Assembly: GCA_026936335.1 (NCBI GenBank)
Contig: JAPMXV010000004.1
Location: 1 to 64,000 of the forward strand
Direction of reading: 5' to 3'
From: Mantamonas sphyraenae STR306
Taxonomy: Eukaryota > Protista > CRuMs
DNA: 64,000 bases
Shown here: positions 10,273-62,259 of the stretch, in pieces
Layout: each line of letters starts with the position of its first letter
How positions within the stretch are numbered: the stretch's first letter is position 1
Position numbers and translations under genes: made by a program
The notes under the pieces: model-generated
What the model saw: the letters and a program-made list of their open reading frames with translations, nothing else
The model's database searches: none
What the model was told of the DNA's origin: nothing

Positions 10273-11382
10273 ATGGACCAGCCCCTGTTTGGAGAAGAAA
10301 AGAAAAAGGCACGTGCTTATTCCCCCCTCCCCTCCCCTTTCACCCTCCCTCCTCCTCCCCCCTTCCTACCCCCCTCCTACCGTCCCCAACCCCCCCCCCC
10401 CCCGCATTCACTCTCTGCCGCCCCACACCTTCTGCCACCTCCCACACATCCCCTCGGCCCTCACCTACCCTCTCTCTCCTCTCCTAACCCGCTTGCTCCT
10501 CTACCCCGTCGCCCTGTCCGCTCTGTGCATCCGTTCTCCCGCAGACAAAGTACACCAAGCTTGCCGTGTACTTCCTCCTCACGGCTTTCGTCCTCGTACG
10601 TCCCGTCCTTCCATGCGCCCGACCTCCCCGCTCCCACACACATCCTCCTTGCCCGTCTATGTCCTCCTCCCCGTCCTTTTCCTCCAATCAATCCGTCCTC
10701 TCCCCCCGCTCCCCACCTCCTGCCCATCACTCGGCCCGCCCTCCCGTCCACTACGCTCCCCCCTCCCCCCATCCCTCACACACGTCCTCCTCCCGCCCGT
10801 CTCCAGGAAACCATCATTGTGGCCATTATCAAGGGCCTCGATGAGCAGGGCCACTGGTACCACTTCTTCATGGCCGCCATTGTCCTCCTCAACCTCGGAT
10901 CCTTTGTCCTCCTCGTACGTCGTCCCGTCCACCCGTCTCCACCCACAAACACACAAACACCTCCCTCTACTCACACCCCATTCTGCACACAGGTCCGCTG
11001 GTGGAACCGCGGCGACCTCGACGAAAAGTTTGTCCGTCTCATCGCCCTCCTCGGCTTCATCACCCTCGTTTCATGTGTCGCTGCGCAATTCTACCTTTTC
11101 CAGCCTCCCCCCGCCAGCGATTCCTGGTACGTTGCCCTTCTCCCTGCCGCTACACCTTCCCCGCATCCTCCCTCGGCCCCACCTCAACCCCGTCCTCCCG
11201 CACCCCCGTCCTCTCGTCCTCTACCCATGCTGACCCCAATCCCACTTTGCCATCTGCCCCACAGCAAACAAGGACTTTTCCGCGGCACCGACAGCCGCTG
11301 CTTTCCCACCTGCCCCACCGACTTTTGCCTCAACCTCCGCTCCGGCTCCTGCTTCAACTGCACCATCGTCACCCAGCAATAG
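10273..11382 (+). CDS. TMEM243: TMEM243 (DUF2678)-like membrane protein with Cys-rich tail; 5 exons, first intron GC-AG
   Basis: Spliced model MDQPLFGEEKKK|TKYTKLAVYFLLTAFVL|ETIIV...FVLL|VRWWNRGDLDEKFVRLI...; PLFGE and W..GDL..KF..LI match TMEM243; three GTACGT donors plus one GCACGT. Confidence 0.8.
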   Translation: MDQPLFGEEKKKARAYSPLPSPFTLPPPPPFLPPSYRPQPPPPPHSLSAAPHLLPPPTHPLGPHLPSLSSPNPLAPLPRRPVRSVHPFSRRQSTPSLPCTSSSRLSSSYVPSFHAPDLPAPTHILLARLCPPPRPFPPINPSSPPAPHLLPITRPALPSTTLPPPPIPHTRPPPARLQETIIVAIIKGLDEQGHWYHFFMAAIVLLNLGSFVLLVRRPVHPSPPTNTQTPPSTHTPFCTQVRWWNRGDLDEKFVRLIALLGFITLVSCVAAQFYLFQPPPASDSWYVALLPAATPSPHPPSAPPQPRPPAPPSSRPLPMLTPIPLCHLPHSKQGLFRGTDSRCFPTCPTDFCLNLRSGSCFNCTIVTQQ

Positions 11383-11399
11383 ACCCCCAAACCAACACA

Positions 11400-12701
11400 A
11401 TGGCCTTCCCCGTTTCCCTCATCGTCGCCCTCGGTGCTGTGGTCACCCTCGCCCTCGTCTTTGTCCTCTCCACCATCCTTTTTGTCGTCAATTTCGCAAA
11501 GCTCCTCTCAAACAGCGACTCTGCTTCCCCACGCGTCCTCAAAGCCTACCCGTTCATCGTTCTCCTTGTCGCCGTCGTTTTCTTCCGTGTCCTCCCTCCC
11601 CAGGCCGAAAAGGCCATCAACGGCGTCCACGGCGAGCTCATTTCTGTCCGCCCTGACGCCCAGGCCTTTCACAACTCTCTCGACGTCGTCGACATGCACG
11701 CAGACAGCCTCCTGTGGGGCCGCGACCTCAACAAGCGATCCGCTGCCGCGCACGTCGACGTCCCTCGCCTCATCGAAGGCAACGTCGCCGTCCAGGGCTT
11801 CACCATCGTCTCCAAGGTGCCTGCCATCATGAACATGCACAAAAACTCAAACAAGACCGTCGATGGCGTCGCCGTCGTCGCAAGCGCCTCCATGTGGCCA
11901 CTTGACACCCTCCACAACCTCACCAAGCGCGCCGTCTACCAGTGCGACCAGCTCCACAAGTTTGCCAAAGCCAGCAACGGCCGCCTGCGCATCCTCAAGA
12001 CTGCCAACGACCTCACCGAGTACATGACTGCCCGCAACCACCCGGACAACAACCGAAACCTCACCGCCGGCTTCCTCGGCATCGAGGGCGCCCACTGCCT
12101 GTCCAACAACCTCGCCAGCCTCGACCTTCTCTTTGACGCCGGCGTCCGCATGGTTGGCCTCACCCACTTTTTCGACAACGAACTGGGCGGCAGTGCACAT
12201 GGCGAGGAACGCTACGGCCTGACTCAGTTTGGCGTCCAAGTCCTCCGCCGATGCGAGGAGCTTGGCATGCTCGTCGACCTCGCACACGCCAGCCCGGCGG
12301 TCGTCGACGACGTCATTCGCCTCGCCAAGCGCCCCTTTGTCACCTCCCACACAGGTGTCTACGAGACCTGCCCATCTCCACGCAACCTCAAGGACGCGCA
12401 GCTTCGCGGCATCGCAAACAGCGGCGGCATCATCAGCATCGCCTACTTTGACGACGCCATCTGCGGCAAGGATGTCCACAGCATTGTCCGTGCCATCCAA
12501 CACGCCGTGTCTGTCGTCGGGCCCGAGCACGTCAGTCTCGGCTCCGACTTTGACGGCGCCGTGAAAACTCCCTGGGACACCTCCAAGCTCGCCTACATCA
12601 CTCAGGCCCTCATCGACGCAGGCATGGACAAGAACCACATCCGTCTCATCATGGGCCAAAACGCCATTCGCGTCCTGACCCAGGCCCTCCCCCAAAACTA
12701 A
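11400..12701 (+). CDS. Membrane dipeptidase (peptidase M19) with N-terminal TM segments
   Basis: DMHADSLLW, LGIEGAH, VDLAHAS, SHTG, RNLKD and LGSDFDG motifs; intronless. Confidence 0.93.
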   Translation: MAFPVSLIVALGAVVTLALVFVLSTILFVVNFAKLLSNSDSASPRVLKAYPFIVLLVAVVFFRVLPPQAEKAINGVHGELISVRPDAQAFHNSLDVVDMHADSLLWGRDLNKRSAAAHVDVPRLIEGNVAVQGFTIVSKVPAIMNMHKNSNKTVDGVAVVASASMWPLDTLHNLTKRAVYQCDQLHKFAKASNGRLRILKTANDLTEYMTARNHPDNNRNLTAGFLGIEGAHCLSNNLASLDLLFDAGVRMVGLTHFFDNELGGSAHGEERYGLTQFGVQVLRRCEELGMLVDLAHASPAVVDDVIRLAKRPFVTSHTGVYETCPSPRNLKDAQLRGIANSGGIISIAYFDDAICGKDVHSIVRAIQHAVSVVGPEHVSLGSDFDGAVKTPWDTSKLAYITQALIDAGMDKNHIRLIMGQNAIRVLTQALPQN

Positions 12702-12743
12702 ACTCCTGCTGCTCCATTCCTCCTCTCTCTCTTCCCTCTTCTC

Positions 12744-13661
12744 TCAATCCTCCGCCCCGCGGATCATCTTCATCAGTTGCGCAATCGTCGCATTCTTGAT
12801 CTCCTTCATCTGCTCCAGCTTGTGCAGCTGGTTCACCAGCCGTTGTTGCTCCCCAGACGTTTTCTGCGACTGCTCCAGCTGCCCTGTTGCAAGCTCCAGC
12901 CGCTGCATCAGATGTTCAATCATCTCATCCTTCAGTTCGTCCCTCATCTTCAGCTCCTCGTTCTGCTGGATCAGCTGCGCCACAATCGACTGCACCTGCG
13001 GGTCGCTCGCGTTCAGCTGATCAACAAGCTCCTCGTCTGCTCCCTCCAGCTCGAATGTCACCTCCTCCCCGCCCTCCTCCCCGTCCTCATCGTCGCTCTC
13101 TGCATCCTGTGCCCGTGCACCCTCCTCCGCCTGCCCCTCCTCTCCTCCCTCTCCCTCCCGCCCGTACGCGCCCTCCCCGTTTTGCATCCTGTTCAGAAAC
13201 GACACCGCGCTGCTCGGCGTCGTCAGGAACGACAGGCCCTGGAACCACGTCTCAAACAGCCGATGCGAGTCTGTCACCACCGTAATCGACCTGTGCACCT
13301 CCCCTTCCGGCAGGCCCCTGTCCAGCACCAGCCGAAACGTCGGCAACGCCTGGTCCCGCGGCGTGCTTTCGCCTAACTCCCCGCGTGTCAGCCTCCCCCC
13401 GTCCTCGCTCTCCCTCGGCCCTCACCACACATGAACAAACCCACCATACTCAATGTGATCCACGTTTGGCAACCACACCTTCAAACTCGTGTTTGCTGCC
13501 GACCGCGTCAGATGCAGATGCGACAGGTCCTCGTCCAGCTGCAACCAGTACGGCACCAGCGACCCGCCATCCTCCAGCAGCATGTATGCCCCTTCCTTCA
13601 TTCTCTCCACTGCCATGCGCAGCCGCAGAAACTTGCGAAATACCGGCGACGGGCTCGACAT
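12744..13661 (-). CDS. PH-domain (PLC-type) + coiled-coil protein, one intron
   Basis: MKEGAYML...WLQLDEDL...IEYG|ESTP...SITVVTDSHRLFETWFQGLSFL; GTGGGT...gctgac...TAG intron in phase. Confidence 0.72.
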
Positions 13662-13711
13662 CGCTCTCCTGCTCTTTCTGCCTCCACCCGCGCGCACACA
13701 CACCCACCACA

Positions 13712-14919
13712 ATGGCCAAAACAACCACACAGTCGCCCGCAAAGCGCCAAAAGGTCGAACAACCTGACGACGCAAAGCCCTCCACGGGCGACGACCAGCC
13801 CGTCAAAAAGACGGTTGCCCAAAAGATCCTCGAGGCCAAGCGCGCCGAGGAGGCCGCCAAGAAAGACCCTCCTTCTCCCAGCGCTTCTTCCGCCTCTTCT
13901 TCTTCCGCCTCCTCTTCCTCCTCCTCCTCCTCCGACGCCTCCAACGGCAAAAAGAAGAAAAAGGGCGCCGAGGTCAAGCTTGATCCGGAAGTTGCCAAGA
14001 AACTGCTCGCCTTCAAGGAAGAAACCGCCAAGCGCGCACACACCGTCATCACAAAGACCATGCCTGCAAAGATTCTCGAGCTCTCCCAACTTGTCGAGGT
14101 GCGTCCCTCCGCCCTTGTCCTCCCTTGCCTTTCCAAAAGACATGCGCCGGCTCCCGCCTTCCGCCTTTCGCCGCTCACCCGCCACACCACCCACACACCC
14201 ACTGCACAACTGCCCCGCAGCAAGCCGAACAGCTCCTTACCGAAGAGCGAGCCCAGGCACGCGAAACAGAAATCATGGCCATGGCTGAAGAGCACCGCCG
14301 CCGTGTCGAAGAGCACGCCGCGCGCAAAGGACGCCTCGGCAAACGCAAGCGCGCAGACACTGCCAGCGAAGAGGCACAGGCCGAAGAGGCCGGCGAGACA
14401 AACAACGACGACGACGACGACGCAAGCGACGCCAGCGACTATGGAGACGTCATCCCGTTCAAGGGCACCGTCAGCAGCAACTCACAGGTCGTCGCCCTCC
14501 TCGGCCTCTTCAAAGAGGAGTGCCTCTCCATGTGCCAAATCCTCAACGTCGTCAAGCTCTGGGCCACCCAGCAGCTGCCCAAGATCGAGGACGGCAACAA
14601 CTTTGGCGTCGGCGTCATCGAAGAGGTTCTCGGCGAGCTTGCACGCGCCGAAGACAGCGCCTACACCGCCCTCGACAGCGTCTCCCGCTACCACCTCAAC
14701 CGTGGCCGCATGGTCAACCTCTATCTCAAGAACCCCCACGTCGAGGACTACCTCCACGCCATCTACGAGATGGACGAGAAGCAGGTCCTCAACGTCCGCT
14801 TCGGCACAAAGGATCTCCGCAACAACCACGCCATCCTCCACGACATGCTCGCCAAGAACATGGACAAGCTCCAAAAGCCTCGTAGCGACAAGGAAACCTA
14901 CTCGGGCATCTTCCTGTGA
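13712..14919 (+). CDS. PSME3: Proteasome activator PA28 (PSME3/REGgamma-like), one intron (14099-14220)
   Basis: Activation loop LPKIEDGNNFGVGV; PHVEDY; LRNNHAILHD...KLQKPRS; N-terminal MPAKILEL. Confidence 0.92.
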
Positions 14920-14935
14920 TCCACAAATTCATTCA

Positions 14936-15661
14936 TTACAACCCACCGTCCTCCAAACCCCGCGCAAGCTTCTCCAGTTCGTCCTGCTCCTGCTCGTCCG
15001 CCACCCGTTGCTGACGCGCCAGTCCCAGCTGCCTCTGCTCCGCATCATACAGCTTCTCCAGGATATCCTTTGGCGGCGTCGCTCCGAAATGCACCGCCTG
15101 CGCAATCGCCACCTCGTCTGCCACGCGCGCAAACATCAGGGCTTTCTTGTGCGCCTTGTCGGCCAGTTCGTACGCCTCCTCCTCGCTGTGCCCTGCCTTC
15201 ATCAGCTCCAGTTGCTTCTCCACAAACGCGTACGACGACGGCTTCTTTCCGTCCCCTTCAATCAGCCGAAACACCTCCACCTGCGTCTCCTCGTTCCGCC
15301 GCAGGTACTTCTCGTGCAGACGGTCCTCTTCATACACAATTGCCTCTGGGTTTGCCACACGATACGGCGACGGCGTCGGCGGGATTCGCTTCACCGTCTC
15401 CAACCACTTTGGTTCCCTGCTCCACACCCCTGTGTCCAGCAGACCCTGCACACGCGTCAAAATCGTCCCACGCTTCGACTACACACACACAGGCCGTGTC
15501 AGCCACCATTACACACCCCCCACTCTCTGCCTCGGCCCCCTCCCACATGCGCGAAATCCCGCCACCCGCCCCCTTGTTCCCCTAACCCCTGTCACCACTC
15601 CCTGCCCTTCCATCCTCTCACCACCTCCCCTCCTCTTTCTTCCTTCCCACTTCCTCACCAT
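14936..15661 (-). CDS. MRPS23: Mitochondrial ribosomal protein mS23-like; first coding exon is ATG only
   Basis: GTILTRVQGLL...EPKWLETVKRIPP, IVYEEDRL, FVEKQLELMKAGHSEEEAY; ATG|GTGAGG at 15661-15659, acceptor TAG at 15479-15481. Confidence 0.8.
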
Positions 15662-15733
15662 TCTCGCAATGCTTTGCCCCAACCTCCGCTCCCTCTCACC
15701 AACCCAACCAAAACCCCCGCCAACCCCCACACC

Positions 15734-18700
15734 ATGGATCCCACACAAGACCTCATCGCCGTTGGCAATCCCAACAAACGCAGACGCTCCAGCTCCATCT
15801 CCTCGACCCCCTCCATCCCCGACCAGAAACGCCAGCGCACCTCCACCGGTGGGTCCTCGGCTCCTCCGGCCTTGGCACACATCCAAGCCGTCTCTGCACA
15901 GCTTTCCGACAAGGACCTCGGCCGCTGGCTCGCCTCCCTCTGGGACCACGTCGGCACGGGGCCCACTCCTCGTCGCACCCCATACCTCGCCCTTGTCTAC
16001 CTCCTCAAGACCCGGCCCAAAGCCTTCAGCACCCAGGACTTTCTCAAACACGTCCGCCACGAGCTCTCCAGGCCACACAACTCCTCCCTCGCCTCCCTCG
16101 CCGCAAACATCCTCTACGTCGTCCTCAAGAACAAGTCCTCCTGGCCAGACTTTATTGCCGACGCCTTTGTCAAGGACTCCTTCCACCAGCGCCTCTGGGT
16201 CGACGTCCCGGCCAATGAGCCCTTTGTCCGCCTCGCCACCACCTGTACACACTCCTCCGAAACCCGCTTCCCCAGCGACCACTTCCGCTCCTCCGTCCTC
16301 GCAAAGGTCCGCCAGGAGATGACCCTCGCCCTCGGCCAAAACGCTCTCGCCGGCTCCACCACGGGCAACGAAGCCGCAAAGGTCCTCCGCCAATTCGAAC
16401 ACATCCCTGCCATCCGTGCCCTCGCCACACAATCTCTCTGCTCCCAAATCGACTCCCTCGGACGCGCCACCCTCAAACGCAGCCTCCGCACCGCCTGGCT
16501 CGCCCTTGCAAACGCCCTCAAGCGCCAGGCCCTCCTCCCAGACGACATCCCGCTTGTCAAGCGCCTCCTCGCCCTCAACTACAACCACCAGCACCTGTTT
16601 GACCCCTACAAACAAGCCCTCGCCTCCCTCATGCTCCGCACCGACCTCCGCACCCTCGTCCTCACCCAACTCCTCTCCAACGCTGCAGACACCCTCTGTG
16701 AACAGCGTGCCTCCTCCTCCTCCTCCTCCTCATCTTCCTCCTCCTCTCAACCCTCCCTAACCACTTCCATCAAACTCATCTCCCACGCCATCACCGCCGC
16801 CAGCGAGCCAAACCAACCCGCCACCACCCATCTCGCAGACGCCATCCTCTCCCTCGTCTCCACACACGCTCAAAACGACAACCAAGACTCCCTCCAAGCC
16901 CTCCACGATGTCATCACAACCATCCTTGACCACCTCCACACACAACTCGACCTCCTCGCTTGCGCAGACAGATTGATCTCCGCCACCGCCGCCGACACCC
17001 TCTCTCCGGCCACCTTGCCCCTACTCCTCGACATTTGGACCTCCATCCTCATCGCTGCCGTCCCTCGCTCCCTCCTTGACTCCTCCTCCTCCTCCTCCCA
17101 GCAGCAGCAACAACCATCCCAAGCACGCCAGGCCTCCCATACCTTTCTCCTTCGCCACAGGGACCTGCTGCGCACCCTCGTTCCCTGGTGTGCCTCGTTG
17201 TCACTCCCTCCAGCCACCATTCTGCACCACCTCCGCAAACCCCTCTTCCTCCTCCCACCCTCTGCCTACGCCCACACTCCTGGCTCTACACAAGCGCGCG
17301 CCCTTTCCTTTCTCACCTCTGTCTGTCCCCTCACCGGCGACGTCCTCCTCACCCTCTGTACACTTGCCCACCACGACGACCACTCCAAAGTCCTCCTCCT
17401 CGACATGCTCGATCTCGCCGTCCCCAACTTTGCTCGCCTGCGTCCCCTCTTGCCCATCACCGTCCCCGAATGGTTTGCACCTGACCAAGACGTCCCAGGC
17501 GCCATTTTGGCATGTGTCGCAGGCGAAATCAAGGTCGGCTCACGCTCCCTCTGGCCTCAGGCTCGTGTCTGGCAAGCCATCGAGGCTCTGCTCATCCTCG
17601 GCGCCTGTGCAGGCGAAACCGTAGGTGCACAGGTGTGGCACAATCTCCCCACCGTACGCATCCTTCTCCAAATGGTCCTCAAGCAACGCTACGCCTACAC
17701 ACACGACCAGCTCGACGTCGAGAGCACCCTCGCCGCAGAAGAAGACGAGGCCCGCGTACAGGCTGCCTCGGACGCTCAGAACAAGTCTGACTACATGTGG
17801 ATGGACCGTTCCATGCTTCGCTGCGCTCCGCCAGATGTCCTCGCTCGCATCGAAGCAAACGCACGCAATCTCCGCCTCACCCTCTTTCTCTGCCAATGCC
17901 GCAATCCAGACTTTCTCGTGCGCACCATCGAGCGCGAGGGCTTCCACGAGGCCATTGCCTGGCTCAAGCCCATCATTGCCACCGACCCCGTCATGCTCAG
18001 CGTCCTCCCTCCGCAAAGCCTCTGCGAAATCCTCCTCAACACCGTGCGCCTCCTCGTCCGCGGCCAAGAGGCCGACGTCGGTCTCATCCCGCAGCTCCTC
18101 GCCCGCATCAAGAGTGTCACCCAGCAGGGCGACGTCGACCATGTCCGCGACCTCTTTGCCCTCTTCCTCCGCTCCCTCGCAGACAAGAGCGCAAAGATCT
18201 GCCTCCTCAACATCCTCTACAACCTCAACACCCAGAATTACATGACCGACCGTCTCGGTGGCGCAGAACCCTACGTCTGGCTCAACAACCTCATCACCTT
18301 TACCCGCAGCCAGCCGCAATTCAACGCCATGGCCGCAGAGTGCGTCGTCGACGCCATCTTTCGCGAGTGCGAACCAGAAGTTTTCGTCTACTACCTGGGC
18401 CACCTCACAGGCAGTGCAAACCACGGCCGTCTCACCGTCCATGGCAAAAACACACACGTCTGCATCATCCTCGGCCGCCTTGTACAGCGCCGACGTCAGG
18501 TCTCCCGCATGCTCCTTGGCGACGCTCGCTTCATGGCTGCCTGTGTCGGCATTGTACGCGATGCAATCAACACCATCGGCTACGGTGTTGTCCCTGTCGA
18601 CCAGCTTGACGACGCGCACGCCGTCCTCGAATGTGGCGACAAGCGTCTCCCGTCCGAAGTCTTTCACGCTGCCGTTGCCGTCGTGGCACACGCTGCACGC

Positions 18701-21025: not shown

Positions 21026-21121
21026 GGCCGGGCCGGCAATTGCTCGGCAATTCACGCAGTTCACGCAAAAAAAAAACCTGGATTGCTGCTCCTTCCCTCC
21101 CCCAATCCAATCCAAAAGCAA

Positions 21122-27395: not shown

Positions 27396-27412
27396 TGCAC
27401 ACCCGCTTTCAT

Positions 27413-28594: not shown

Positions 28595-28666
28595 GTCCTC
28601 TCCGTGCCCACCATGTCTGCAACTTCACATTCTCCTCTACATTTGCCTTGCCGATCCCTCCAAAAC

Positions 28667-36132: not shown

Positions 36133-36153
36133 AAACTGAATTGCTCGCTTTCA

Positions 36154-40617: not shown

Positions 40618-40624
40618 CCACGCA

Positions 40625-41006: not shown

Positions 41007-42790
41007 ACGACGGTGAACAACAAGGCGACGAGGATGACGTAGACGGTAATGGCCAAGGCCCATGGCAGGTGGAGGAGTTGGATGCAGTGGATCACAGCAA
41101 GATGGCGTACGAGGCGTACGAACGGGACGGGTATGTGGAGCACAGTGAGGTGCGGGAGTGGACGGAAGAGGAGGTGGTGGAGTGGCGACAAGCAAACGAG
41201 GTGCAGGTGCATGCGACGGGAGTGAAACACGCACAGCTGCCTCGCCCATGCCGTACGTTTGAGCAGATGAATCTGGAACACAGGCTGAGTGTGGAGATTG
41301 CCAAGGAGGGGCTGAGGACACCCACGGTGATTCAGAGTGCGGCGGTGCCGGTGATTCGAAGTGGACACGACGTCATTGGCACGGCCAAGACAGGCTCTGG
41401 TAAGACGTTGGCGTATGTGTGGCCCATGTTGGCCCATATCATGGCACAGCGAGAGGTGGGGCGTGGCGAGGGTCCGATTGCTCTTCTGGTCGCCCCGACC
41501 CGGGAACTGGCACAGCAGATTCACAGCGAGTGCAAGCGGTTTGCACGCGTGTACAACCTGCGCTGTTGCAACGCATACGGAGGCATCTCGGGAAAGCAGC
41601 AGTACGTGGAACTGAAGGCTGGCACAGAGGTGGTGGTGGGTACGCCGGGACGAATCATCTCCCTCATGCGCAAGCATCTGCTCAAGACATCGCGCATCAC
41701 CTTTCTGGTGCTCGATGAGGCGGACAAAATGTTTGAGATGCGCTTTGAGGCGCAGGTGCGTTCCATTGTGGGCCAATTGCGTCCGGATCGGCAGACGGTG
41801 CTGCTCAGTGCCACGTTCCGAGGCAAGCTGCAACAGTTGGCCCGCGAGGTGTTGCGTGATCCCGTGCGTATTGTGGTGGGCGGACAAGGAGAGGTGAACA
41901 TGGATGTGAAGCAGAGTGTGTACTTGATGGCGGACGATGCGGAAAAGTGGGATTGGCTGCGAGGCCGACTGGACCGCTTTGTGGAAGCCGGCAGTGTGGT
42001 GGTGTTTGTGGCACAGCGAGCACGTGTGGACACGCTGGTGGCTCGCATCGAAAGTCAAACAACAGTGGCATGTGTGGGTGTGCACGGGGAGAAAGAGCAG
42101 AGCGAGCGCACCCGGCTGATCAAGGCCTTTCGGCGTGGCGAGGTGCCTGTGCTTGTGGCCACCGACGTGGCAGCACGCGGCCTCGACGTACAGAGTGTCA
42201 AGACGGTTGTGTGCTACGACGAGGCTCGGGACCAGGACACACATGTGCACCGTGTGGGACGCACAGGACGAGGCGGGAGCCAGGATGGGCAAGCGCATGT
42301 GCTGGTTACCATGCGTCAGAACGCGTATGCTGGTCATCTGGTTCATGTCATGACAAAGAGTGGCCAACAGGTGCCTCGTGCCCTGTTGGAGCTCGCACGT
42401 AGCCACAAGCGCTTCCAGGAGCCGAAGAGTGCATCGGGTGGCGGACATGGGGGCGATGGAGGTGCACGCAGTAGCAAGGATGGGTGGTCGGAAGACAGCA
42501 AGACGCAGTTTGTGGGTGGTGGCACCCTCAGCACAGTGGACGATGCTTGGCGTGACGCACAGGCTTGGTGGCAGGGAGAGCAGAAGCAGAAAGAACAAGG
42601 ACAGGTGCAGCAGGTGGTACAACAACAGCAGCAACAGCAGCAAGTGGACGAGGCAAGGAGAAAGGCGATGGAAATCGCACGAAAGATGGCTGCATTTCCC
42701 AGCGGCTCATTGACACAATCTCAGCAGGATCAGCAGGATCAGTCGTTGTCATCATCCAGCAGCAACTCATCGAGGCCAAACAACTTCTGA
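40625..42790 (+). CDS. DDX42: DEAD-box helicase DDX42 (SF3b125)
   Basis: AKTGSGKT, PTRELA, DEADKMF..QVRSI..RPDRQT..SAT, HRVGRTGR; DALDAYM and VDHSK N-terminal motifs. Confidence 0.88.
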
Positions 42791-48225: not shown

Positions 48226-51989
<3,764 letters not shown>

Positions 51990-51997
51990 TTGTGTCG

Positions 51998-53839
51998 TCA
52001 CCCTTCCTCCTCACCACTGCTGCTGCTACTGCTGCTACTGCTGCTTCCTGCTGTCTCACTCTCCCCTTGCTCCATCGTAGTCGTCGTCGTCGTTGTGGTC
52101 GTCGTCGTGGTGGTCGACCATGACGAGGTGTCATCCCCATCCTCGGGGGTGTTTCCCATCCCCCTCTCCAGGTCCTCACTGTCAATGCTGCTCACACTCT
52201 CTGTGCGCACACTGCCCACAGAGATCTGGTTGACCATCAGATTCGCACTGCTGCCTCCCACGCGTCCATACATGGCTTCCTGTGCCTTTTTGATGGCCTC
52301 TGTGATGGCATCCACCCATTCCTCCTTCTCCTCTGCCGTCGACGTGTACAGCACAAACGTACCACTCGTCGACATGATCTGAAACTGGTTGGTGCGTTTG
52401 CCCTCGTCCGGGATGTCGCTGATTCGTGCTGCCTGCAGGTTGATCTCCCCCTTGTACTCGTACAGGTCCCCAAACGTCGCCTTGCTCGCATACACCAGCA
52501 GGTCGGAAAACAGGAAGAACGTGCGCAGCTTGTCCGCTCCCCGCTTGGACGAACTCGGCTTCTTGTACAGCTTGCCTTCCTTGAGAAACTTCCGCGACGG
52601 CGAGATCAGAGCCTGGAACCGCTTGCCTGTCAGACGCCCCTGCAGTTCCACAATGCTTTGCATGTTCTCTGCGTCTCGTTTGCTCTCGTTGATGTTCTTG
52701 GCTACAGCCACCACCGCTTCCAGGGCTCGTTCCAGATCCGCCAGATCCCCGTGATCCTCCTCCGTGTGCTTCACCAGATCCCGCAGCAGCATTTCGTACC
52801 GTGGCACTCGTTGCACAGGGGTAATCAGGAACGCAGCCAGATCCCTTCCGGCCAGCGATGGGATGTTCTTCACAGAAGCAATGTAGTTCACGTACTCCGG
52901 GTCCTTCTCGCACACCTTTAGCTGCTTCATCGCGTTGTCAAAGTTGTTGATGTACTGTGTGTACATCTTCAGGTAGGGTGACTGCACATGCATCGTACTG
53001 GGTGTCAGCATACAGTACGTCTCTCCTGCCGTCCTGCCTTTGCCCCACAACGTCCCTCTCCCTACCATTTCCACAAACACCTTGCCCACAAACGGGTCCT
53101 CCTTCTCATACTCTTTCTCCAGCGACTGCAGCAGTGTCTTGTTAAAGTCGTAGATCAGTTCGATGTTTGTGAAAATCGCCTGCACGTGCTCAGGCGTGAA
53201 CTTTTTCATCACCGTGCCCGCCCGGTACTTGATCGGCTGATAGAAAATCTGTGTGCGATGTGTGTGTATGTATGCGTGTATGCGTGTGTGTGACCATGGT
53301 AAGCACCCTTCCCATCTCTAAACCGTGCCGTGGCGTGGGCCCTCACATGGCCGCCTCCATTTCCCAACCTCCCTTCCTTCCTTTCGTCCTTCTCACACCG
53401 TCTCCCCGTCCTCCCCACCCCTCCCCAACCCCTCCCCACCCCGCCTCCCGCTTACCTTGGTCATCACCTTGAGTCCATCCACATATGTCTTTTCCGTGGA
53501 CATGATCTCCCCCACCACCTGCTTGCGATGGGCCTGTCGCTTCTCCTGCTTGCGTTTTGCCTTGGCCTCCTCGTCCTCCTCTTCCTCACCCACCCTCTTG
53601 TCCTTCCCACTGCTCTCCTGTGTTGGCGTCTGTGTCTGTGTCTGTGTCTGTGTCTCCTGCTCCTCTTGTGCCTCCTGCACCTCTTCAGGCCCTTCCTGTG
53701 TTTGTTGCTCTTCCTGCTCTTCTTCCACAATCTCTTTTACATTCTCCTCTTCCACCTGCTCTTCCTCCTCTTTCGCCTCTTCCATCTTGGGTGTGGGCGT
53801 ACTCGACGGTGGTAGCTCCCATGGGTTGCGTCTGGACAT
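51998..53839 (-). CDS. DH-PH RhoGEF (FGD-like), two introns
   Basis: EIMSTEKTYVDGL, IFTNIE, LITPVQRVPRYEMLL, FFLFSDLLVY, EKEEWVDAI. Confidence 0.95.
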
Positions 53840-53888
53840 GTCGAACGAGTTTGGAGGCAGCAGCGCAGCGACGAAATCCTTCAGTCCT

Positions 53889-56800
53889 TCATTGGCCCCC
53901 CACACACTCCATCACCACATCCACACACCTCGGATCGACCCCCCATGCCACCAACTGCACCTGTTGTGCCCACGCATCCCCCTCTTCCTCGTCCTCCATG
54001 GCCTCCAGCGCAGCATGCACTCGATCCGGTGTGGGCAGACCGTGCATCCGCAGCATGGCGACAAACCGCCCTGTGCCCTCGCCTGGCAATTCCCATCCTC
54101 GATAGTACGCCTTCAATGCCTCCTTGTCTCTCGTGCTCACTTGCACCTGGGCCTCCACACGCTGCAGCACACTCTCCAAAAACGTGCTCTGCACCAGCGG
54201 TTCTGCCGTGAATGCCTGCTGCTGCATCTCTACCTCCTTGCCATTGCCTTGGTTTCGTCCTGGCCTTCGCGACGGATGTACGTGACGGTAGTACGCATGC
54301 AACAGCAAAAGGTTGGCCAGCTGTTGGCTGTCTTCCATCGCACTGCTGCCCACACGCTGTTCCATCTCTTGTACCATGTGTTGCAATTGCAGGTATGTCT
54401 GGAGAATGCCTGCCTTCTCCCGTGCCAGACACTCGTACAACACTGCCGTCATAAATGCACCCTCCTTTCGTGACGCCGCTCGCTCTGCACGCATTCCTTG
54501 CGGCATCTGCAGCTCCGCCTCGTACTGTGCCTCTTCCTCCTCTGCAGCCGCCCCTTCAGCCTCTGTCCACATGCCTCCGTCGTCGCAAAAGTGCCGTGCA
54601 AACGCAAGCACGTTTGCATCGTCCGAGAACGCAGCCACAAACTCGTCCTTGCGACGGCGTGCCTGTGCCCCTCCTCCTGCGCCAAACCGTTGCTTGGGAA
54701 ACGATCGCGACAGCAGAGAGCGTGATCCATGTGCATCCTGTTCGTAGGACAAGTAGCCTGTCTTGCGCTTGACATAGATCACAGGACGCTCCTGAAGTGC
54801 AGCTGCATGCTGCGGATTGTCCATGCTCAGGCTGCACGGCCAGTACCGAGCACTGTCGACGGCAATGCGACGCACATGCGCAAATTCGGGCAACAAACAC
54901 GGAGCCACACGTTCCACACGTGGACCCTGACCAGGCAGACTGTCTGGCGTCTCCAACTCGATCTCCAGCGGCATAAACACAGGCTGCATCGTGTCCACGT
55001 CACGTACCTCCACACACCGTTGCTCCAGTGCCATCACATACAGGTGCCGTAACGCCTGCATGTGGTACTGGCCGTCGTGGACGCTCATGGGGAACTGCGG
55101 GTACAACGAACACACCAACGCCGCGATTGCGTGTCACTCGTGCCCAGAGTGTACCTGCCTGCACCCACAAACAACAGTCCGAGTGCCATGTGCAGACACA
55201 TGTGCTCACCATAGTTGCGTTCTCCCGCAGGCGCCACCAGGTAGCGTCGGATCCACCGCATCACCGTCACGTTGCCCGTGCCTGCCATGACCATGGCCAG
55301 GGACAACAGACACACGTGGATGATGGCCCTCGATGTCGGCACCTTGCCGTACTCCCGCTCCAACTGCTCCACCAGCCCCAACAGTACATCAAAGGCATCC
55401 TGGTGCCCCGAACCAGCATAACGAAGACCGATGGCAAAGCAAGCCCCTGCCACCGCATTGTCCTGCACCCTCTGCACATGCTCCACATCAATCTCTGCAC
55501 GCAGCAGCTCCGCAGGCTCCATGTCACCACACCGTTCCAGAGTGCTGCGCACCACGGCAGGAACCTGACTGACCACCCACTCTGTGCTTGCCTCGATCCC
55601 CTGCCACAGGATCAGGTTGCGTGCCAACACACGCAGCAACACAACGTCCGGTCGCACGTAGTCCAGCAGGAACAGCGTGTTGGGCAACTCCACCATGGCC
55701 GCCATGGCCGACGACTCGCTGCGCAGGTACATCAGCCCCAACGCAAGGATGGCACCGGGTGCAGTCACGTCCACGTTGACGTTGGGTCCCTCACGCACAC
55801 GCGAACACTTGTGTGTGTTCGCGGTTGAGTCTGCCACATCCGCCACATCTGCCATCATCTCCATACTGCGAGCAATCGTTGCGCCTCCACTGCTGCCCGA
55901 TGCCACCGCCTCGCCCATGTCCTGTCCACCCAGAATGTACTTGCGCAGCCTGTCTTCCACCTTGAGATCGCCCAGACTGGAGGCCACCGTGCCTCCCTTG
56001 GCCAAAGTAACCCACCCCAAGGCCATCCCTGCCGCCAGTGCCTGCGATTCCCTGTCTTGTTCCTTGTCTGTGCTCGGACGCTTGCCAATCTCCCCAAGCA
56101 GCACCTCGGTCACACGATGGTGTGCACTGCCCTGGTACAGGAGGCCCACCCCCATCACAGCTGCACTCTGCACCAGAAACGGCACATCCAGGTCCACCGT
56201 CGTCGGCGGCAGCAGCGTGGGCACGTGGATGCACAGCATCTTGCTCACCGCAGTGTTCATCGTGCCACGGTACGCTGCTGCCATGCCCAACAACACACCC
56301 ACGTTGGTCACCTGGTCGCTTGCCTTGAGGTAATCAAAGATGTCTGTCAGTGCAAGCTCCTTCAAGTGTCCCAGCAAGCCCAGGGCCATCACCACTCCTG
56401 CGTGGCTGTTGCTCGGACTATCTGGTTTGTTGTACACAATCCATGTGCGTGTGATCCGGTTGTTGCCAGGGGCCAATCGCAATCCTGTTGCCACGCCATT
56501 GTGGAACTCTGCCCATGCTGTCTGGCCCTCTGCCCACTGTGCCTCGTCCAGACGGATGCGCGCGTGATTGCCCGGCAGGATGCCACTAAAGTCCATCTCG
56601 GGCACAGCCAGTGCTTCTGTAAGTGGCGCCGTTGCCGTGGCAAACGTCAGCATGCCACGTCCCACACTCGATGCCATCTTGCGCACTGCAATTTCGGCCA
56701 ATCGCGTCTGCTGCTGTTTGATCAGGTCGCCATCGTTGACTTCGGGGCCCAGCGACGCACGCAGAAGCACAGCACGCGTCACATCCATCAAACGTTGCAC

Positions 56801-59800
56801 CTCCTCCACGCGCCGATCCCTGCTGAACCGCATGCGCACCCACTCCTGTGGCAGCTCACACCCGGTCACTGTGTCTCCCTGGCCTTCGCCTCCTCGTCCG
56901 CTGGACCCTCCATTCGCCCCACTGCCACCACCACCACCTCCAGCCACAGCTGCACTCGAGGGTCCGTCTCCATCGCCTCCATCCTCTGGGCCACGATGGC
57001 TGCCTGCTCGCCCATGTGTGGTGTCGTGCGTCGATGTCAATCCAATGATGGCCGACAGGGTGCTGTGTGTCGCATCCTGCCCACCCTGTGCCGTGCCTTG
57101 CAGATGCAACCCGGATGAGGACGACGAGCCCGACGAGTGTCCACTCCATCCGTGCTGAGTCTGCGTCGTCGTCTTTGTGCTGCCCTTGCCACCACCTCGT
57201 GTGACGTCGTCCATGTCTGCCTCTCCGTCCTTGCGGAACTGCAGTGCCAAGTCCTCGCGTCCAATCATGGTGTATGTGGCTGCTGGCCATGTGTCCAGCG
57301 GATCGCGTCTGCACGTGCTCATGGCCTCCTTCAAGGGCATGGCCACGCCCAGGGGAAGACACTCCACGTCCTCCAGGGTGAACTGTTCCACATACATGGC
57401 ATTCACCACCCTGTGTGCATGGCTGTGCAACAACACTTCGCTGCCCGACGCCATGCCCCGTCCTCCCGCCCCCAGCATCAGCGTCGTATTGCCCATCAGC
57501 ATGGACACAAGCCCGGACGACGACGCAGACAATGACATCGACGATGACGACGTCGCTCGGTGGCCATTGCCACCTTGGGTTGTCTCGGGCGACATGAAAC
57601 TGACTGGGCTTGTGATGCCCACGCCACCTGTGGTTTCGTCACCCTTGCTAGTGCTGCTGTTGTTGTTGTTTCCTCCCTCCAATGTATCCTCAATGGGTGC
57701 AAACATGTGCACCGGCGTCTTGCTGCTGCTGCGTGACGTCGCACGTGTGTCGTCGTGGCTGTTGGCAGACGTTCCTGACGCGTCAGCAATCATCACATCT
57801 GCCAGCTCGCCAAAGCTTGTGCTGTGCGGCAGATACGAATCGCCGCTGTGGTTGGCCCCAACGGCCATTAGGGCGGCTGCAGGCGTGGAGCTGCGTGACA
57901 TGGATCGGTTGGCTGCATAGTGGCTGGTGGCCACATCCACACCGGCCGCTTCGTTGTCCGACAGCACATCGAAGAAGAGACACACCTTGCGTGTGAGCTG
58001 GCAAGGGAGACCGGCCGTGGTGACGTACTTGGAGGAACCGGCATCCAGGGTGGCTGCTGCGCTGCCGCTCGGGTTGCGAAACCATTGGGCGTCGCTGACC
58101 AGAGGGAAGCTGTGGGTTGCCCCACGCATGCGGGTGACCATCCAGCCATATACGTCGGGAGGGGGCATGATGAGACCCGATTCGTGCACGTGGTACACTG
58201 CCTGTTCTTCCTGGGCCTGTTGTGCGTGCGCACTGAGCCCCATGCCGGCAAACACCTCGCTCTCCTCGCTGTACAGTCGTGCATGGTCTCGCACGTAATG
58301 GTCCAGATAGGCCACAGCCACATCGCCCACTTGGTGGGCCATGCACACCAGTAGGCGTGCGAGCTTGGCCTGTTGCGGACGAAGCAGCATGTTCAGCTTC
58401 TGGTTTTCGTACAACAGGTGCAACGCAGTCATCACCTCTGCATGGCGTGTCTCCAATTCCGACATCTGTGTGGAATGCATCAGTGTCGTCATGGTGTCCT
58501 CGTCGAGCAGAGTCTCCCACTCGCCTTGCGTCGTGTCTCGTGGCTCCAGTACAGCCTGCAAGCTGGGCATACTTGCCATGGATGCGTGGTACTCACTGCC
58601 CAGCAACTGTGCCCATGCATCGCCATCCTCATTGTCGTTGCTTGGGCCAGTTGCATGTGCCGCGCCACCGATGGCACGCATGATCTGTGCAAACACAAGC
58701 CATTCGCGTTCAGCCAACAGTGTGTGTGCGTGGCTGGTGCGACCCAGGCTCATGTCCCGTGCACAGCATACCACCGTGCTGGCAATGTTCATGAGCGTGT
58801 GTGCAGACACGACATAGCCGAGCACATCCAAACACTGCTGCACCAGCGACGACGTCACGGCACACGGAATGCTGCAGCGCACCTCGTGCCCGCTGTTCAG
58901 GTAGAGTGTCAGCCTGTTGGACACAGCTTGGGACAGCGCCACCACCCCGACGGTGTCTGCATCCAGCACAATCGGTTGCCACTCCTCTTTGTCTTTGTGT
59001 TGCTGCGACGTCCCATGCCCCTCCTTCTCCTGCGCGCCTGCTCCACCTTGGGTCTCTGTGGCATCCTGCCCATCAACACTGGCCACGCTGTTCATGCTCA
59101 TGTCCAGACCACTGTCGCTCTGGTCCATGTCCATGCCTGAGCTCTGATCCATGTCGCTGCTGCTCTGGTCCATGTCGCTGTTGCTGACTGCACTCGTGTC
59201 CATGTCACTGTTGCCGTCTGTGTCATCGTTCTGCACTTGCACACCAGAAACGTCCACCACCACCGCATCCTCTTGCCCCGTGCCAGCCTTGGTTTTGAAC
59301 AGCCCTGCTGCTGCTTCCAGCTCGTCTTGAGGCACAGTGCATGTGGCAAACGGACTGTTGCCCACATGCAAGCGCATGTCACCGCGTGTGCCGAGCACCA
59401 ACAGATCCAAGGGGTTTGTCTGCCACGCTTGCTGCTCCGCCACACGCGGACGCGTTGCCTGAACCGCCACAGCATCCGCCACATCGTCCAACACAAAGCA
59501 CACACGCATGGGCTCGTCAACCGACAGATTGATGGCCACCAGTCGCTGTGTGTCTGCATACACCATGCACAGCAGCGGTTCGTTGTTGCAATCGTGTGTC
59601 ACAAACACCTTGCTCACGCACACCTCGCTCTCCTCGCTCCACTGCAACTCCATATACACCTCTGGGTCAATGGCTCCATGGTCGTCTTCCCCCAGTGTCT
59701 CGTTCAGAGTGTCGCTACTGCCTGTGCTGTTCATCGTAACGCTCCCACTCATGTCCCCAGCTGACGACACACTCAGGCCCGTCTCCTCCTCGCCTCCATC

Positions 59801-61226
59801 GTCTGTGCGGCCACCATTCCCAGCTCCGCCTCCCTGTGTTGCCTCCTGCGTCTCTAGAAAGGTACGTCGGAAGCTGCGTCGCTGATATGCATCGTTGCTC
59901 CTGCGAAGCAGCCAGACGGCGTGCAGACACCGAGCGGTGTCGTAGGTCATCAGAAACGGAAACACGGGTGAAGAGAAACACACCTGCAGGTGTGGGTTGC
60001 TCACAAACCCGCTCAGGGTCTCTTGCGCGGGGATGGCAGGCACTGCGTCTGCGTGCACGCGTGCAAACGATGCCGTAGAGGCATCCAGGCTGTCCACTTG
60101 CTCGCCTGCACTCAAGTCCAACAGAGGACGCTCTGGGTCGGCAAAAAGAAACTCAAAGTAGCTGAGGGGCTTGACCTCGTCCAGTGGATGGGCCAGGCTG
60201 AACAGCAGTGGCAGACTGTCGCCGACTGCTGCTCTCTCCTCCCCACCACCCTCGTTGTCATTGTCGTGGCTGCTACGATGTCGTTCCAACAGAAGCCCTC
60301 GCGGCAGCACGTGCATGGCCGCCATCTTGCAAGGGAAGGGCACGGTGAACATCGCCCCGCTGTTTGTGTACACACTCAGGCTCTGTGCATGGAGAACACA
60401 CAGAGACAATCCGGCCCATTCGTGGCTGCGCAGGGTCGCTGCTGATGGCATTGTTGCACTGCTGCTGTTGTGGTGGTGGGATGCACTGCGTTGCTGAGAG
60501 TCGTGCCGTCCTGCCTCACTTGCGGTCGTAGAGTTGACCCCCCCTCCTCCTCCACGCCTCTGGGTCCCCATACTGCTCCCTTCACCTTCATGCTGGTCCA
60601 GCGAGGCATCCAGAAACGACGAGTACAAGGTTTGCGGCTCCACAGAGCCGCCCGTGCGTTCCAACACCGCCTGTGGATCTGGCAACAGCTCAGCAGGCCC
60701 ATGTGACGACCCATTGTGTGTGGATGAACTCATGTTCCCTGCTGTGGTTTCTGTATGTTCTGCTGTGCCGCTGGTCAGCCCTGTGTCTTCGCTGAAGAAG
60801 CGAGTCCACCCTGCGTCCTGGATATCTGCTGCTGTGCTGTAGCTGGCCGTCACACGCTGTCCATGCATAACCACCACCCGTCTCTTTCCAATCACCAACT
60901 CTTGGTCATAGCTCCCTCCCTCCTGCGACGCGTACAACACCCGCCGCGAATTTGGCGCCATCTTGCCCAGGCCCTGGCTGCCCTGTGCCTGTTCAAAGCC
61001 CAACAGCGCCAATTCAAGCGTACGATGTGGGCCCTGTATCAGCTCACTCGATGCTTGCCTGTATGCGTGCGTGTGTGCGTGTGTGCATGTGTGTGAGGCC
61101 CTGTCAGCCGTGATCCTGATTCGAGCGCACCAATTCCAGACGGCTCTCGCTTGGGATGCAGGAACAACGGGCGTTGAAGGGAAGACGGAGGTGGACGGGC
61201 GCACATGGGCATCATGTCACATACAT
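53889..61226 (-). CDS. ANAPC1: Anaphase-promoting complex subunit 1; one-base frameshift at ~55131; 5' intron 61059-61224
   Basis: LFSLAHPLDE, EFHNGVATGL, PC repeats, NVDVTAPGAILALGLMYL, YHMQALRHLYV, VAPCLLPE. Confidence 0.93.
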
Positions 61227-61244
61227 TCTGTGTTTGGCAGTTTG

Positions 61245-62259
61245 CTACTCGTTGCGTTGGAGGGCTTTTCGCAGGGCGTCCGTGCGCTCCAAGGCGTGGT
61301 CCATACACTGTTCAAACACATCCTTGGTGAAGCCCACTCCTCCTGGTTTGTACACACCACACAGCTTGCCCTGCTCATTGAACACCACAGATAGGCGAGT
61401 GTCCAGCAGCAGTTCCTCTTCGTTGGTTGGGTCCGCAAGCAAGACGCCGTCAAACATGCCAAAGGAGGCGGCCAGTGGCACGTACGCAAGCTCCAGTGAC
61501 CGACATGCCTCTTCTCGCCTGTCTGCCACAACTTCCCCTGTGTCCTTGAGTTGGATGCTTGGCAGGCGCACTGGGTGGGTGAGTGAGTGAGTGAGTGTCT
61601 GTGTCAGTGATGGTGGTGGGGTGCACGGACCAGTGTCCTCCACACACGCTGGCAAGGGGGACATTACCATCCAACAAGGCAGCCATCAATGCCAGCAACG
61701 CAGCGTCGTTGACATTGCCATCATGGTCAATACAAACGAGGTCCACGTGGAGGACCCAAACAAGCCCACTGGCCTCGTCCACAAGCTGAGTCTTGTCCAA
61801 GGCCCCCGATGCGTCCACAATGTCCTGCAGGAACTCAGTCACCGTGTCTGCTTCCTCAGATGGCTTGCCAATGCGGAAGCGTGACGAACACAAGGGTGAC
61901 AGGGTGGTGGATACCACTGTGTGTGGGGGCAGGGAGAGAGGGAGCGGGTGGTGAGTGAGTGTGCAGGCAAGCTGTGCCACGCTCCTCCTTTCCCATGGCT
62001 TACCAACAAATCCGTGGACATTCTCATCGTCCAATGGCTTGGCCACCTCTGCTTTGATGCCTGCCACAATGGTTGTGTTGCCCACCTTGGCCAAGGCACT
62101 GCCGTCGCTGGAGGAGACCACGCCTGTGCTGACCACCGAGTCTCGAAACTTGAGCAGGGCCCTACCGTCTGCACGCACCTCCTTCTCCACAAATGCCTTG
62201 TGGTATGACTTGGGATGCACCTTGCGGAACACCTCCTCGGCATCTCGTTCCGACGACAT
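61245..62259 (-). CDS. EXOSC8: Exosome subunit RRP43, two introns
   Basis: RADGR..FR, DGSALAKVGNTTIVAGIKAE, DLVCIDHDGNV.DA, LLADPTNEEE, KPGG. Confidence 0.9.

Follow-up and report, generated by a model that had tools for sequence, protein, structure and literature searches.

In microsporidia, transcripts are known to start in upstream genes or to end in downstream genes (PMC3629993, where Williams 2005 and Corradi 2008 are cited), and in Cryptosporidium UTRs overlap irrespective of strand (PMC11761812). In Giardia and Naegleria some stop codons also serve as poly(A) signals and 3' UTRs are ultrashort, which has been described as a hallmark of compaction in protist genomes (PMC11529991). Mantamonads are a deep-branching eukaryotic lineage placed close to the base of Amorphea, and in the paper describing the genome of Mantamonas sphyraenae the words intergenic, UTR, overlap and compact are absent. 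We analyzed a stretch of this genome of 64,000 nt (contig JAPMXV010000004.1, positions 1 to 64,000; the window), for which five stop-to-start spacers of 8-49 nt between genes on the same strand had been reported. Gap and hexamer statistics were taken from 264 kb of the same contig, while strand orders were counted in the 64-kb window. The explanation that we favor, with a probability of about 60%, is that the short spacers are a consequence of genome compaction, with single-gene transcription units that abut or slightly overlap, very short UTRs and promoters situated inside upstream genes.

Tandem junctions in the window

All five spacer strings quoted in the original prediction are present at their positions, and four of them hold with valid starts. 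The first separates a TMEM243-like gene (10273-11382, plus strand) from a membrane dipeptidase gene (11400-12701, plus strand; Peptidase_M19, Pfam E = 5e-68) by 17 nt (11383-11399). Splice sites read in the sequence, Pfam and coding potential give the TMEM243-like gene five exons (10273-10308, 10545-10595, 10807-10914, 10993-11126 and 11265-11382), with the intron donors GTACGT (three times) and GCACGT (once). Because intron 4 (138 nt) is in phase, this gene stops at the TAG at 11380 whether the intron is spliced or not. The TMEM243 and RhoGEF genes were searched with profiles one exon at a time; exon 4 of the former matched DUF2678/TMEM243 (PF10856) with E = 0.0019, which is under the gathering score. 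Coding potential peaks on exons 3 and 4, and the tail of about 90 aa past the family profile has a negative coding score. Translation of the dipeptidase from the ATG at 11400 gives a hydrophobic N-terminal anchor, the next in-frame ATG comes only at codon 98, and 86-90% of the 433-aa protein is covered by homology to bacterial dipeptidases of about 388 aa; this coverage and the lack of any other ATG before codon 98 fix the start at 11400.

At the second junction a Sel1-repeat gene (35026-36132, plus strand; Pfam Sel1, 368 aa) ends with TAG at 36130-36132, and 21 nt later (36133-36153) a gene for an AAA ATPase of the Fidgetin-like-1/spastin type begins in the same frame, with one stop between the two ORFs (36154-37878, plus strand; Pfam AAA, AAA_lid_3 and Vps4_C; best relatives FIGL1 and spastin). 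After the ATG at 36154 the next one is codon 66, and this initial stretch of 66 codons has a coding score of +10.5. A single Sel1-AAA gene with an intron across the stop was considered and rejected, as the sole donor candidate, GTGAAC, is poor and the coding potential of the Sel1 gene continues up to the stop. Word searches with the dipeptidase and the AAA ATPase returned no mantamonad relatives and no transcript-derived proteins, and were useful only for placing N-termini. A search for contigs encoding the AAA ATPase gave no record, and one for sequencing runs matching positions 49500-55499 gave none.

The other three junctions lie on the minus strand, in a chain that holds genes for an RRP43-like exosome subunit, APC1, a RhoGEF-PH protein and an F-box-like protein. 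The RRP43-like gene (61245-62463; RNase_PH and RNase_PH_C, with an intron of about 100 nt) ends with TAG at 61247. The 18-nt spacer that was proposed to follow it (61227-61244) exists only if the APC1 start codon is split, since translation from the ATG at 61226 ends after MYVT unless AT/GTATGT is divided by a 166-nt intron ending ACAG/G. The simpler start, the ATG at 60961, fits the N-terminus of Pfam ANAPC1 (residue 98 of the ORF corresponds to profile position 14, and the ATG is residue 86). The 18-nt spacer is doubtful, and the interval is probably one of 283 nt of CA-rich non-coding DNA (60962-61244, minus strand). APC1 itself (53889-60961, minus strand; Pfam APC1_C, APC1_3rd, Apc1_MidN and ANAPC1) has a 60-nt GT-AG intron at 55154-55095 and is followed, after 49 nt (53840-53888), by the RhoGEF-PH gene (51998-53839, minus strand; Pfam RhoGEF and PH), with exon 1 starting from the ATG at 53839 and the main exon at 53317-51998. 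The acidic first exon was assigned to this gene because RhoGEF profile positions 1-22 lie on it and continue with positions 27-180 on the next exon. A second ATG 18 codons downstream would widen the spacer to 103 nt at most. Between the RhoGEF TGA at 52000 and the ATG at 51989 of the F-box-like gene (50729-51989, minus strand; at least two ORF pieces, with a weak F-box match, E = 0.15) there are 8 nt (51990-51997), or 35 nt at most if an alternative ATG nine codons downstream is used.

These gene models could be at fault, with real starts well downstream or upstream stops spliced out, in which case the spacers would be ordinary. The RRP43-APC1 interval (283 instead of 18 nt) is probably such a case, the F-box-like and RhoGEF genes have the alternative ATGs 9 and 18 codons downstream, the stop-poor C-rich strand lets ORFs run on, and the TMEM243 tail of about 90 aa scores negative. 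We nevertheless consider such an artefact very improbable. Start-codon checks ruled out true starts well downstream at four of the five junctions, and the alternative ATGs still give only 35 and 103 nt. The starts of the dipeptidase and the AAA ATPase are fixed, as are those of six genes outside the window (GH2, LRR, IDO, HDDC2, F-box and WD40), by a signal peptide, by domain onset or by there being no other ATG. Convergent gaps, which need no start calls, are equally small.

Gene packing and strand order

Segments with coding potential make up 79% of the 264 kb. Tandem spacers within the window measure 8, 17, 21, 49 and 72 nt, all within the distance of up to about 100 nt by which same-strand neighbors in operons are recognized; the longest, absent from the original prediction, lies between the genes for SWIP (WASH complex subunit 7) and a nucleotide-sugar transporter (28595-28666, minus strand). 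Eight further Pfam-distinct tight tandem pairs and one Pfam-unchecked pair, with spacers of 10-75 nt, were found in the 264 kb outside the window. Short spacers are not peculiar to the genes of the original prediction, and convergent gaps are just as short: the median of 38 stop-to-stop gaps is 58.5 nt, 30 of them are below 125 nt and five are overlaps. According to ORF coordinates, the coding sequences of the convergent DDX42 and CTU2 genes overlap by 52 nt (42739-42790). Head-to-head starts can be similarly close. Those of PMS2 and DDX42 (40615-40627; ATG 40617 on the minus strand and ATG 40625 on the plus strand) are 7 nt apart, with the PMS2 start fixed by HATPase_c_3 beginning at residue 25, and the ATGs of the LRR-Ank and TMEM243 genes are 44 nt apart. 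Very small gaps are found in tandem, convergent and divergent arrangements alike. Divergent gaps between coding segments are larger in general (median about 528 nt, an upper bound), which indicates that promoters usually do occupy space and that the very tight tandem cases are somewhat special. No operon mechanism explains the tight convergent and head-to-head pairs, so initiation and termination in or beside coding sequence must exist anyway.

Among the 30 adjacencies of the window there are 17 strand switches and no excess of co-directed neighbors, and gene orientation looks random. The same-strand chain pointed out in the original prediction is real and comprises seven or eight genes, yet its length is unremarkable (P = 0.1-0.2 by chance for the long minus-strand run), as a run of at least seven among 31 randomly oriented genes is expected with P = 0.19 and one of at least five with P = 0.64.

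Rfam and tRNA scans of the window revealed no non-coding RNA genes. The C-rich strand is so poor in stops that open frames run on, and a 2579-aa ORF at 13286-21025 conceals three genes. Annotation of this genome is affected, as long open frames on the C-rich strand are misleading.

The spacer ends rich in ACAC(A) to which attention had been drawn are real, but they reflect a general CA/TG-rich, A/C-rich composition of non-coding DNA. In the 100 nt before start codons there is a 3-4 fold enrichment of ACACA, its complement TGTGT is likewise enriched, and CAAAC is enriched only about 2 fold; ACACA/CAAAC was rejected as a defined start-proximal signal and is read as A/C-rich, CA-repeat-like composition. 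Upstream genes of tight pairs showed no composition suggestive of a promoter in their final 40 codons, which resembled the ends of convergent genes in coding score, A+C, C and G+C content (P = 0.2-0.7, at low power).

A candidate poly(A) signal at stop codons

The hexamer AATG[AG]A was present 0-45 nt past the stop at 32 of 112 stops, compared with 3.05 ± 1.74 for random stop triplets. Counted in bins of -20 to 0, 0 to 20 and 20 to 40 nt from the stop, it occurred 6, 19 and 11 times (0.72 expected per bin), and in convergent pairs alone 3, 11 and 3 times (0.38 expected). AATAAA and TGTAA were not enriched near stops. In coding sequence AATGAA is depleted on the sense strand (6 occurrences against 31.0 ± 5.3 after codon shuffling) and not on the antisense strand (20 against 14.9). 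AATG[AG]A is for these reasons our candidate for the poly(A) signal, a 3' signal beside or fused with the stop and avoided within coding sequence, as is characteristic of compact genomes. The strict hexamer marks only about a third of genes, some 60-70% being without it; among the upstream genes of tight tandem pairs, 6 of 15 have it within 45 nt past the stop, a rate as for all genes. At four of the 112 stops the TGA lies inside AATGAA ("dual-use" stops), and one of these is the APC1 TGA, overlapped by AATGAA at 53888-53893 (minus strand). The hexamer is located on or after the downstream ATG in three pairs, namely RhoGEF and F-box-like, an unnamed gene and GH2, and a TAF1C-like gene and WD40. 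In the first of these, AATGGA at 51985-51990 (minus strand), 10 nt past the RhoGEF stop, includes the ATG of the F-box-like gene, so that a putative poly(A) signal would share its letters with a start codon. Near the TMEM243, Sel1 and RRP43 stops there are loose variants only.

With compaction as the cause of the short spacers, each gene would be its own transcription unit, with a 3' end specified by a signal of the AAUGAA/AAUGGA type that overlies the stop codon or lies up to about 45 nt past it, and 3' UTRs would measure a few tens of nt. A signal so close to the stop implies that the upstream message of a tight pair would end within the spacer or a few codons into the next gene. The start site of the downstream gene would lie at the very end of the upstream gene or inside it, the 5' leader would be very short, and adjacent units would touch or share tens of bases. 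Two-gene read-through RNAs would arise occasionally as by-products, and a cap-proximal copy of the hexamer in the downstream message would presumably be ignored. We infer these transcript starts, ends and overlaps, as well as hexamer-directed cleavage. The embedded promoters and nested transcription that had been proposed beside operons fit our tests, since genes are tightly packed in all orientations, there is no bias towards co-direction, and the candidate 3' signal follows upstream genes of tight pairs at the same rate as other genes.

The operon-like polycistronic mRNAs of the original prediction gained no support. Without trans-splicing, some tight pairs could give stable poly(A)+ RNAs with two ORFs, either beside internal monocistronic RNAs or with the downstream ORF translated from the bicistronic RNA, and the pairs without a strong hexamer, TMEM243-dipeptidase and Sel1-AAA ATPase, would be the likeliest sites. 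The spacers of 8-21 nt are in accordance with this, as is the finding that the TMEM243, Sel1 and RRP43 stops are followed by no strict AATG[AG]A, and such transcripts have precedents: the similarly compact Cryptosporidium parvum has 201 of them, involving about 10% of its genes (PMC11761812), and green algae have hundreds (PMC7896298). We still regard them as a rather unlikely explanation, with roughly one chance in five. Absence of the strict hexamer at three junctions is hardly informative when some 60-70% of all genes lack it, and co-directed genes are not in excess. The upstream ORFs, with lengths from 368 to about 2400 codons, make leaky scanning or reinitiation implausible. Bypass by scanning calls for a short upstream ORF with few or weak ATGs, whereas internal ATGs are present in all of TMEM243-like (five exons), Sel1 (368 aa), RhoGEF (several exons) and APC1 (about 2400 aa).

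Trans-spliced operons, too, would be expected to carry a poly(A) signal between the cistrons, so that its presence argues against mature bicistronic mRNAs only. In such operons the precursor would be cut at the AAUGAA-type signal and a spliced leader would cap the downstream cistron. The spacers are of lengths known from Oikopleura (23-30 nt) and Ciona (no intercistronic DNA) (PMC1488885), and acceptor-like C-rich tracts ending in AG directly precede some ATGs, as in the last TMEM243 codons. Several observations make this improbable. Tightness is not confined to same-strand pairs and orientation is random; there is no AG in three of the four shortest spacers of the window, nor in one 45-nt spacer outside it, and two AG-less spacers (RhoGEF to F-box-like and VPS9 to IDO) follow a purine-rich stretch. 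With the hexamer at or past the ATG of the second gene, a single precursor could yield just one of the two mRNAs. Among the papers searched, none links spliced-leader trans-splicing with CRuMs; Rfam found nothing in the window, which weighs little as spliced-leader RNAs are lineage-specific. It is equally improbable, in our estimate, that tight pairs are truly co-transcribed with AAUGAA/AAUGGA serving both as the upstream poly(A) signal and as the downstream AUG, processed through an unknown spliced leader or by another route; if it were so, operon processing in eukaryotes would be extended to a new lineage and possibly by a new mode.

Comparison with operons and compact genomes

Operons of Ciona, Oikopleura and C. 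elegans also have same-strand neighbors 0-100 nt apart and a poly(A) signal of the upstream cistron (PMC1488885), whereas Mantamonas is not known to have a spliced leader, is tight in all orientations and has genes in random order by strand. Polycistronic nuclear mRNAs of green algae likewise carry two ORFs very close on one strand (PMC7896298), but these rely on leaky scanning past an upstream ORF (PMC11291117), and the upstream ORFs of Mantamonas run to hundreds or thousands of codons and contain many ATGs.

To call the arrangement an undescribed expression system, as the original prediction did, is too strong, since the architecture matches that of Giardia, microsporidia, Cryptosporidium and Naegleria, and the data do not at present point to a new expression mechanism. 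With microsporidia, Giardia, Cryptosporidium and nucleomorphs it shares gaps of tens of bases in all orientations, UTRs that would extend into neighbors and promoters that would lie in upstream genes. Those are genomes of reduced parasites or endosymbionts, while Mantamonas is free-living and phagotrophic, its gene set is rich (Integrator, WASH, APC/C) and its short spliceosomal introns are many, and its transcript overlap is predicted here from sequence. If this is true, Giardia-like packing occurs in a free-living, intron-bearing and gene-rich protist, with promoters within neighboring genes and with AAUGAA as a non-canonical poly(A) signal that is fused to stops and sometimes to starts, which bears on the limits of compaction without parasitism and on the insulation between RNA polymerase II units. 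The candidate hexamer on or just past the stop codon resembles the dual-use stops of Giardia, Spironucleus and Naegleria, although it is AAUGAA/AAUGGA, recognized by sequence statistics, and theirs is AGURAA or AAUAAA. In some tandem pairs it includes the start codon of the next gene, of which we found no description in PMC11529991. In comparison with the known systems only two things are new, namely the hexamer and the lineage, that of a CRuMs protist which is free-living and contains introns.

Stop-to-start spacers in the window

The original prediction, that same-strand genes separated by spacers of 8-21 nt are candidates for operon-like polycistronic or nested transcription, is largely right as an observation. 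All quoted junction strings were found at their coordinates, and the short spacers hold at four of the five junctions (upstream gene first: TMEM243-dipeptidase, Sel1-AAA ATPase, RhoGEF-F-box-like and APC1-RhoGEF), where true starts far downstream were not found, while RRP43-APC1 is weak. TMEM243 has five exons and C-rich introns that are open in frame, and because its intron 4 (138 nt) is in phase, TAG at 11380 is the stop whether spliced or not, which leaves 17 nt to the dipeptidase. When exons were searched against Pfam one by one, each unjoined, exon 4 matched DUF2678/TMEM243 (E=0.0019). The tail of this gene (11127-11382) runs about 90 aa past the end of the family profile, is rich in Cys and Pro and has a negative coding score; the stretch directly 5' of the dipeptidase gene may owe its translation solely to the rarity of stops on that strand. 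The dipeptidase ATG begins a hydrophobic anchor, and the next in-frame ATG is codon 98, past the onset of bacterial dipeptidase homology. For this M19 dipeptidase (11400-12701, +) all 120 listed best relatives are bacterial or metagenomic (48-54% identity), with no eukaryotes among them, and those that are named belong mostly to Acidobacteriota. The gene is thus a candidate for bacterial transfer followed by acquisition of an N-terminal membrane anchor.

The 21-nt spacer between Sel1 and the AAA ATPase (fidgetin-like/spastin-type) is unambiguous, and codons 1-66 of the latter score as coding. These two genes lie in the same frame with a single stop between them (TAG; stop and spacer at 36130-36153), as do VPS9 and IDO outside the window in segment L014 (TGA; L014:8807-8854); stop-codon read-through at either place would fuse two proteins. 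RhoGEF and F-box-like are 8 nt apart (35 nt with the second ATG), and APC1 and RhoGEF 49 nt (103 nt with the second ATG). Exon 1, which is acidic, belongs to RhoGEF, because profile positions 1-22 lie in it and 27-180 in the next exon. At RRP43-APC1, ATG 61226 yields only four codons before a stop if it is not intron-split as AT|GTATGT (166 nt, donor GTATGT); alternatively, the plain ATG 60961 agrees with the ANAPC1 profile at the N-terminus, and the gap is then 283 nt, CA-rich and CA-repeat-rich. The start of APC1 is therefore ambiguous within 60962-61226 (-). An artefact of gene models, which is most improbable as a general explanation of the spacers, likely applies only here.

Gene packing along contig 4

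The window is the initial 64 kb of contig 4 (402,514 bp) in an assembly of 25.06 Mb and 78 contigs (published as 25 Mb with 9,416 predicted genes, PMC10492846). Its DNA is about 60% G+C and holds about 31 genes, among which Pfam identifies Integrator subunit 1, WASH complex subunit 7, APC1, PMS2, DDX42, CTU2, CRNKL1, PA28 and others. Introns are 60-240 nt long and GT-AG, with a single GC-AG exception in TMEM243 (10309-10544, donor GCACGT). The C-rich strand carries long open frames that mislead: one of 2579 aa (13286-21025, +) is not a single gene, its first 2 kb containing PA28 (~13988-14919, +) and mitochondrial ribosomal protein S23 (14936-15478, -), tail to tail with a gap of 16 nt, and Integrator subunit 1 starts only beyond ~15.5 kb.

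We extended the sample to 264 kb with the adjoining 200 kb of contig 4 (C4), choosing ORFs by codon log-likelihood under a model trained on those genes of the window that have Pfam support, that is, with our own picker and no curated annotation. Tight spacing is not peculiar to the genes first named, since outside the window different Pfam families meet at a minimum of eight further same-strand junctions: Alg9-HDDC2 (75 nt), GTPase-F-box paralogues 1-2 (67 nt), GTPase-F-box paralogue 2-LRR (68 nt), VPS9-IDO (45 nt), an unnamed gene-GH2 (37 nt), GH2-Ras-like (63 nt), TAF1C-like-WD40 (10 nt) and CAP-Gly/transglutaminase-F-box (73 nt). Most of their downstream starts are pinned by a signal peptide or domain onset. 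A ninth junction (C4:243536 to 243592, 55 nt) is Pfam-unchecked. The two tandem paralogues (L012:2127-8109, C4:176127-182112, +) each have an EF-Tu-like GTPase joined to an F-box-like domain at the C-terminus, an unusual pairing.

Packing is equally visible in other orientations. Convergent stop-to-stop gaps, which are independent of start-codon calls, have a median of 58.5 nt in 38 pairs (264 kb); 30 are below 125 nt and five are overlaps, DDX42/CTU2 by 52 nt. The start codons of PMS2 and DDX42 stand head to head 7 nt apart, the former being fixed by an ATPase domain at residue 25, and the interval between LRR-Ank and TMEM243 is 44 nt. Measured between coding segments, divergent gaps are wider than convergent ones (median ~528 nt, an upper bound). 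Gene orientation is random, with strand switches at 17/30 adjacencies in the window and P=0.19 for a same-strand run of at least seven among 31 genes. Head-to-head and tail-to-tail tightness is beyond any operon mechanism, so transcription must already start and end inside or beside coding sequence.

A candidate poly(A) hexamer

In the first 100 nt 3' of stops AATGAA is enriched 12.8-fold and AATGGA 7.2-fold, with no enrichment of AATAAA or TGTAA. The strict hexamer AATG[AG]A has only 169 copies in 528 kb (both strands), yet at the 112 gene-end stops called by our picker in the 264 kb we counted 6, 19 and 11 in bins -20..0, 0..20 and 20..40 nt against 0.72 expected per bin. Convergent pairs alone, which are free of confounding by downstream start codons, gave 3, 11 and 3 against 0.38. 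Between -5 and +45 it occurs at 32 of 112 stops, compared with 3.05 +/- 1.74 at random stop triplets (maximum 10, 1000 trials), and at four "dual-use" stops AATGAA spans the TGA. Within 208 kb of coding sequence AATGAA is depleted 5-fold on the sense strand (6 copies against 31.0 +/- 5.3 after codon shuffling); the antisense strand has no depletion (20 against 14.9). Copies at gene 3' ends lie at 4077, 9276 and 24989 (+) and at 4094, 6258, 14933/14937, 25013, 27413 and 53893 (-), and further ones across C4:64001-264000 (segments L001-L020). Enrichment together with sense depletion is the signature of AATGAA, and more weakly AATGGA, as a candidate non-canonical poly(A) signal, and a poly(A) signal of such signature is known from compact protists (PMC11529991). 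One of the six sense copies (36508-36513, +) falls within the AAA ATPase ORF, 118 codons from its start and 378 nt past the Sel1 stop; it may mark a distal 3' end of Sel1 or a site of premature cleavage.

Transcription of abutting genes

At tight pairs the strict hexamer follows the stop within 45 nt in 6/15 upstream genes, a rate as in all genes. It overlaps the stop of APC1; past RhoGEF, AATGGA at +10 contains the ATG of F-box-like; the GH2 start codon, validated by a signal peptide, sits within AATGAA; and at the TAF1C-like-WD40 junction AATGAA is found 20 nt into WD40. The most likely 3' end of an upstream message is thus at the junction or some tens of bases inside its neighbor, which counts against obligate mature bicistronic mRNAs. 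Where the upstream ORF is hundreds to thousands of codons long, reinitiation or leaky scanning past it is implausible (for leaky scanning, compare PMC11291117). Operons resolved by a spliced leader are untouched by this argument, because there too a poly(A) signal stands at the junction (PMC1488885); the absence of AG from several spacers, the lack of a known leader in CRuMs and the random orientation speak against them, and although none is decisive we consider such operons rather improbable.

The reading we prefer, with a probability of roughly 60% and resting on sequence features, is that each gene would be its own transcription unit with ultrashort UTRs, abutting or slightly overlapping its neighbor, the upstream transcript ending at or some tens of bases beyond the junction and the downstream promoter being embedded in the upstream gene. 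A test of composition over the final 40 codons of upstream genes turned up nothing promoter-like. Read-through bicistronic RNAs alongside single-gene RNAs, as in Cryptosporidium, are unlikely, if less so than operons. Of the earlier interpretation, nested promoters are better supported and a new expression system is unsupported. The most distinctive feature is the non-canonical candidate poly(A) hexamer. Precedents for abutting or overlapping units exist in microsporidia (PMC3629993), Giardia and Naegleria (PMC11529991) and Cryptosporidium (PMC11761812), and M. sphyraenae would appear to bring this known compact-genome architecture to a new lineage that is free-living, intron-rich and deep-branching.
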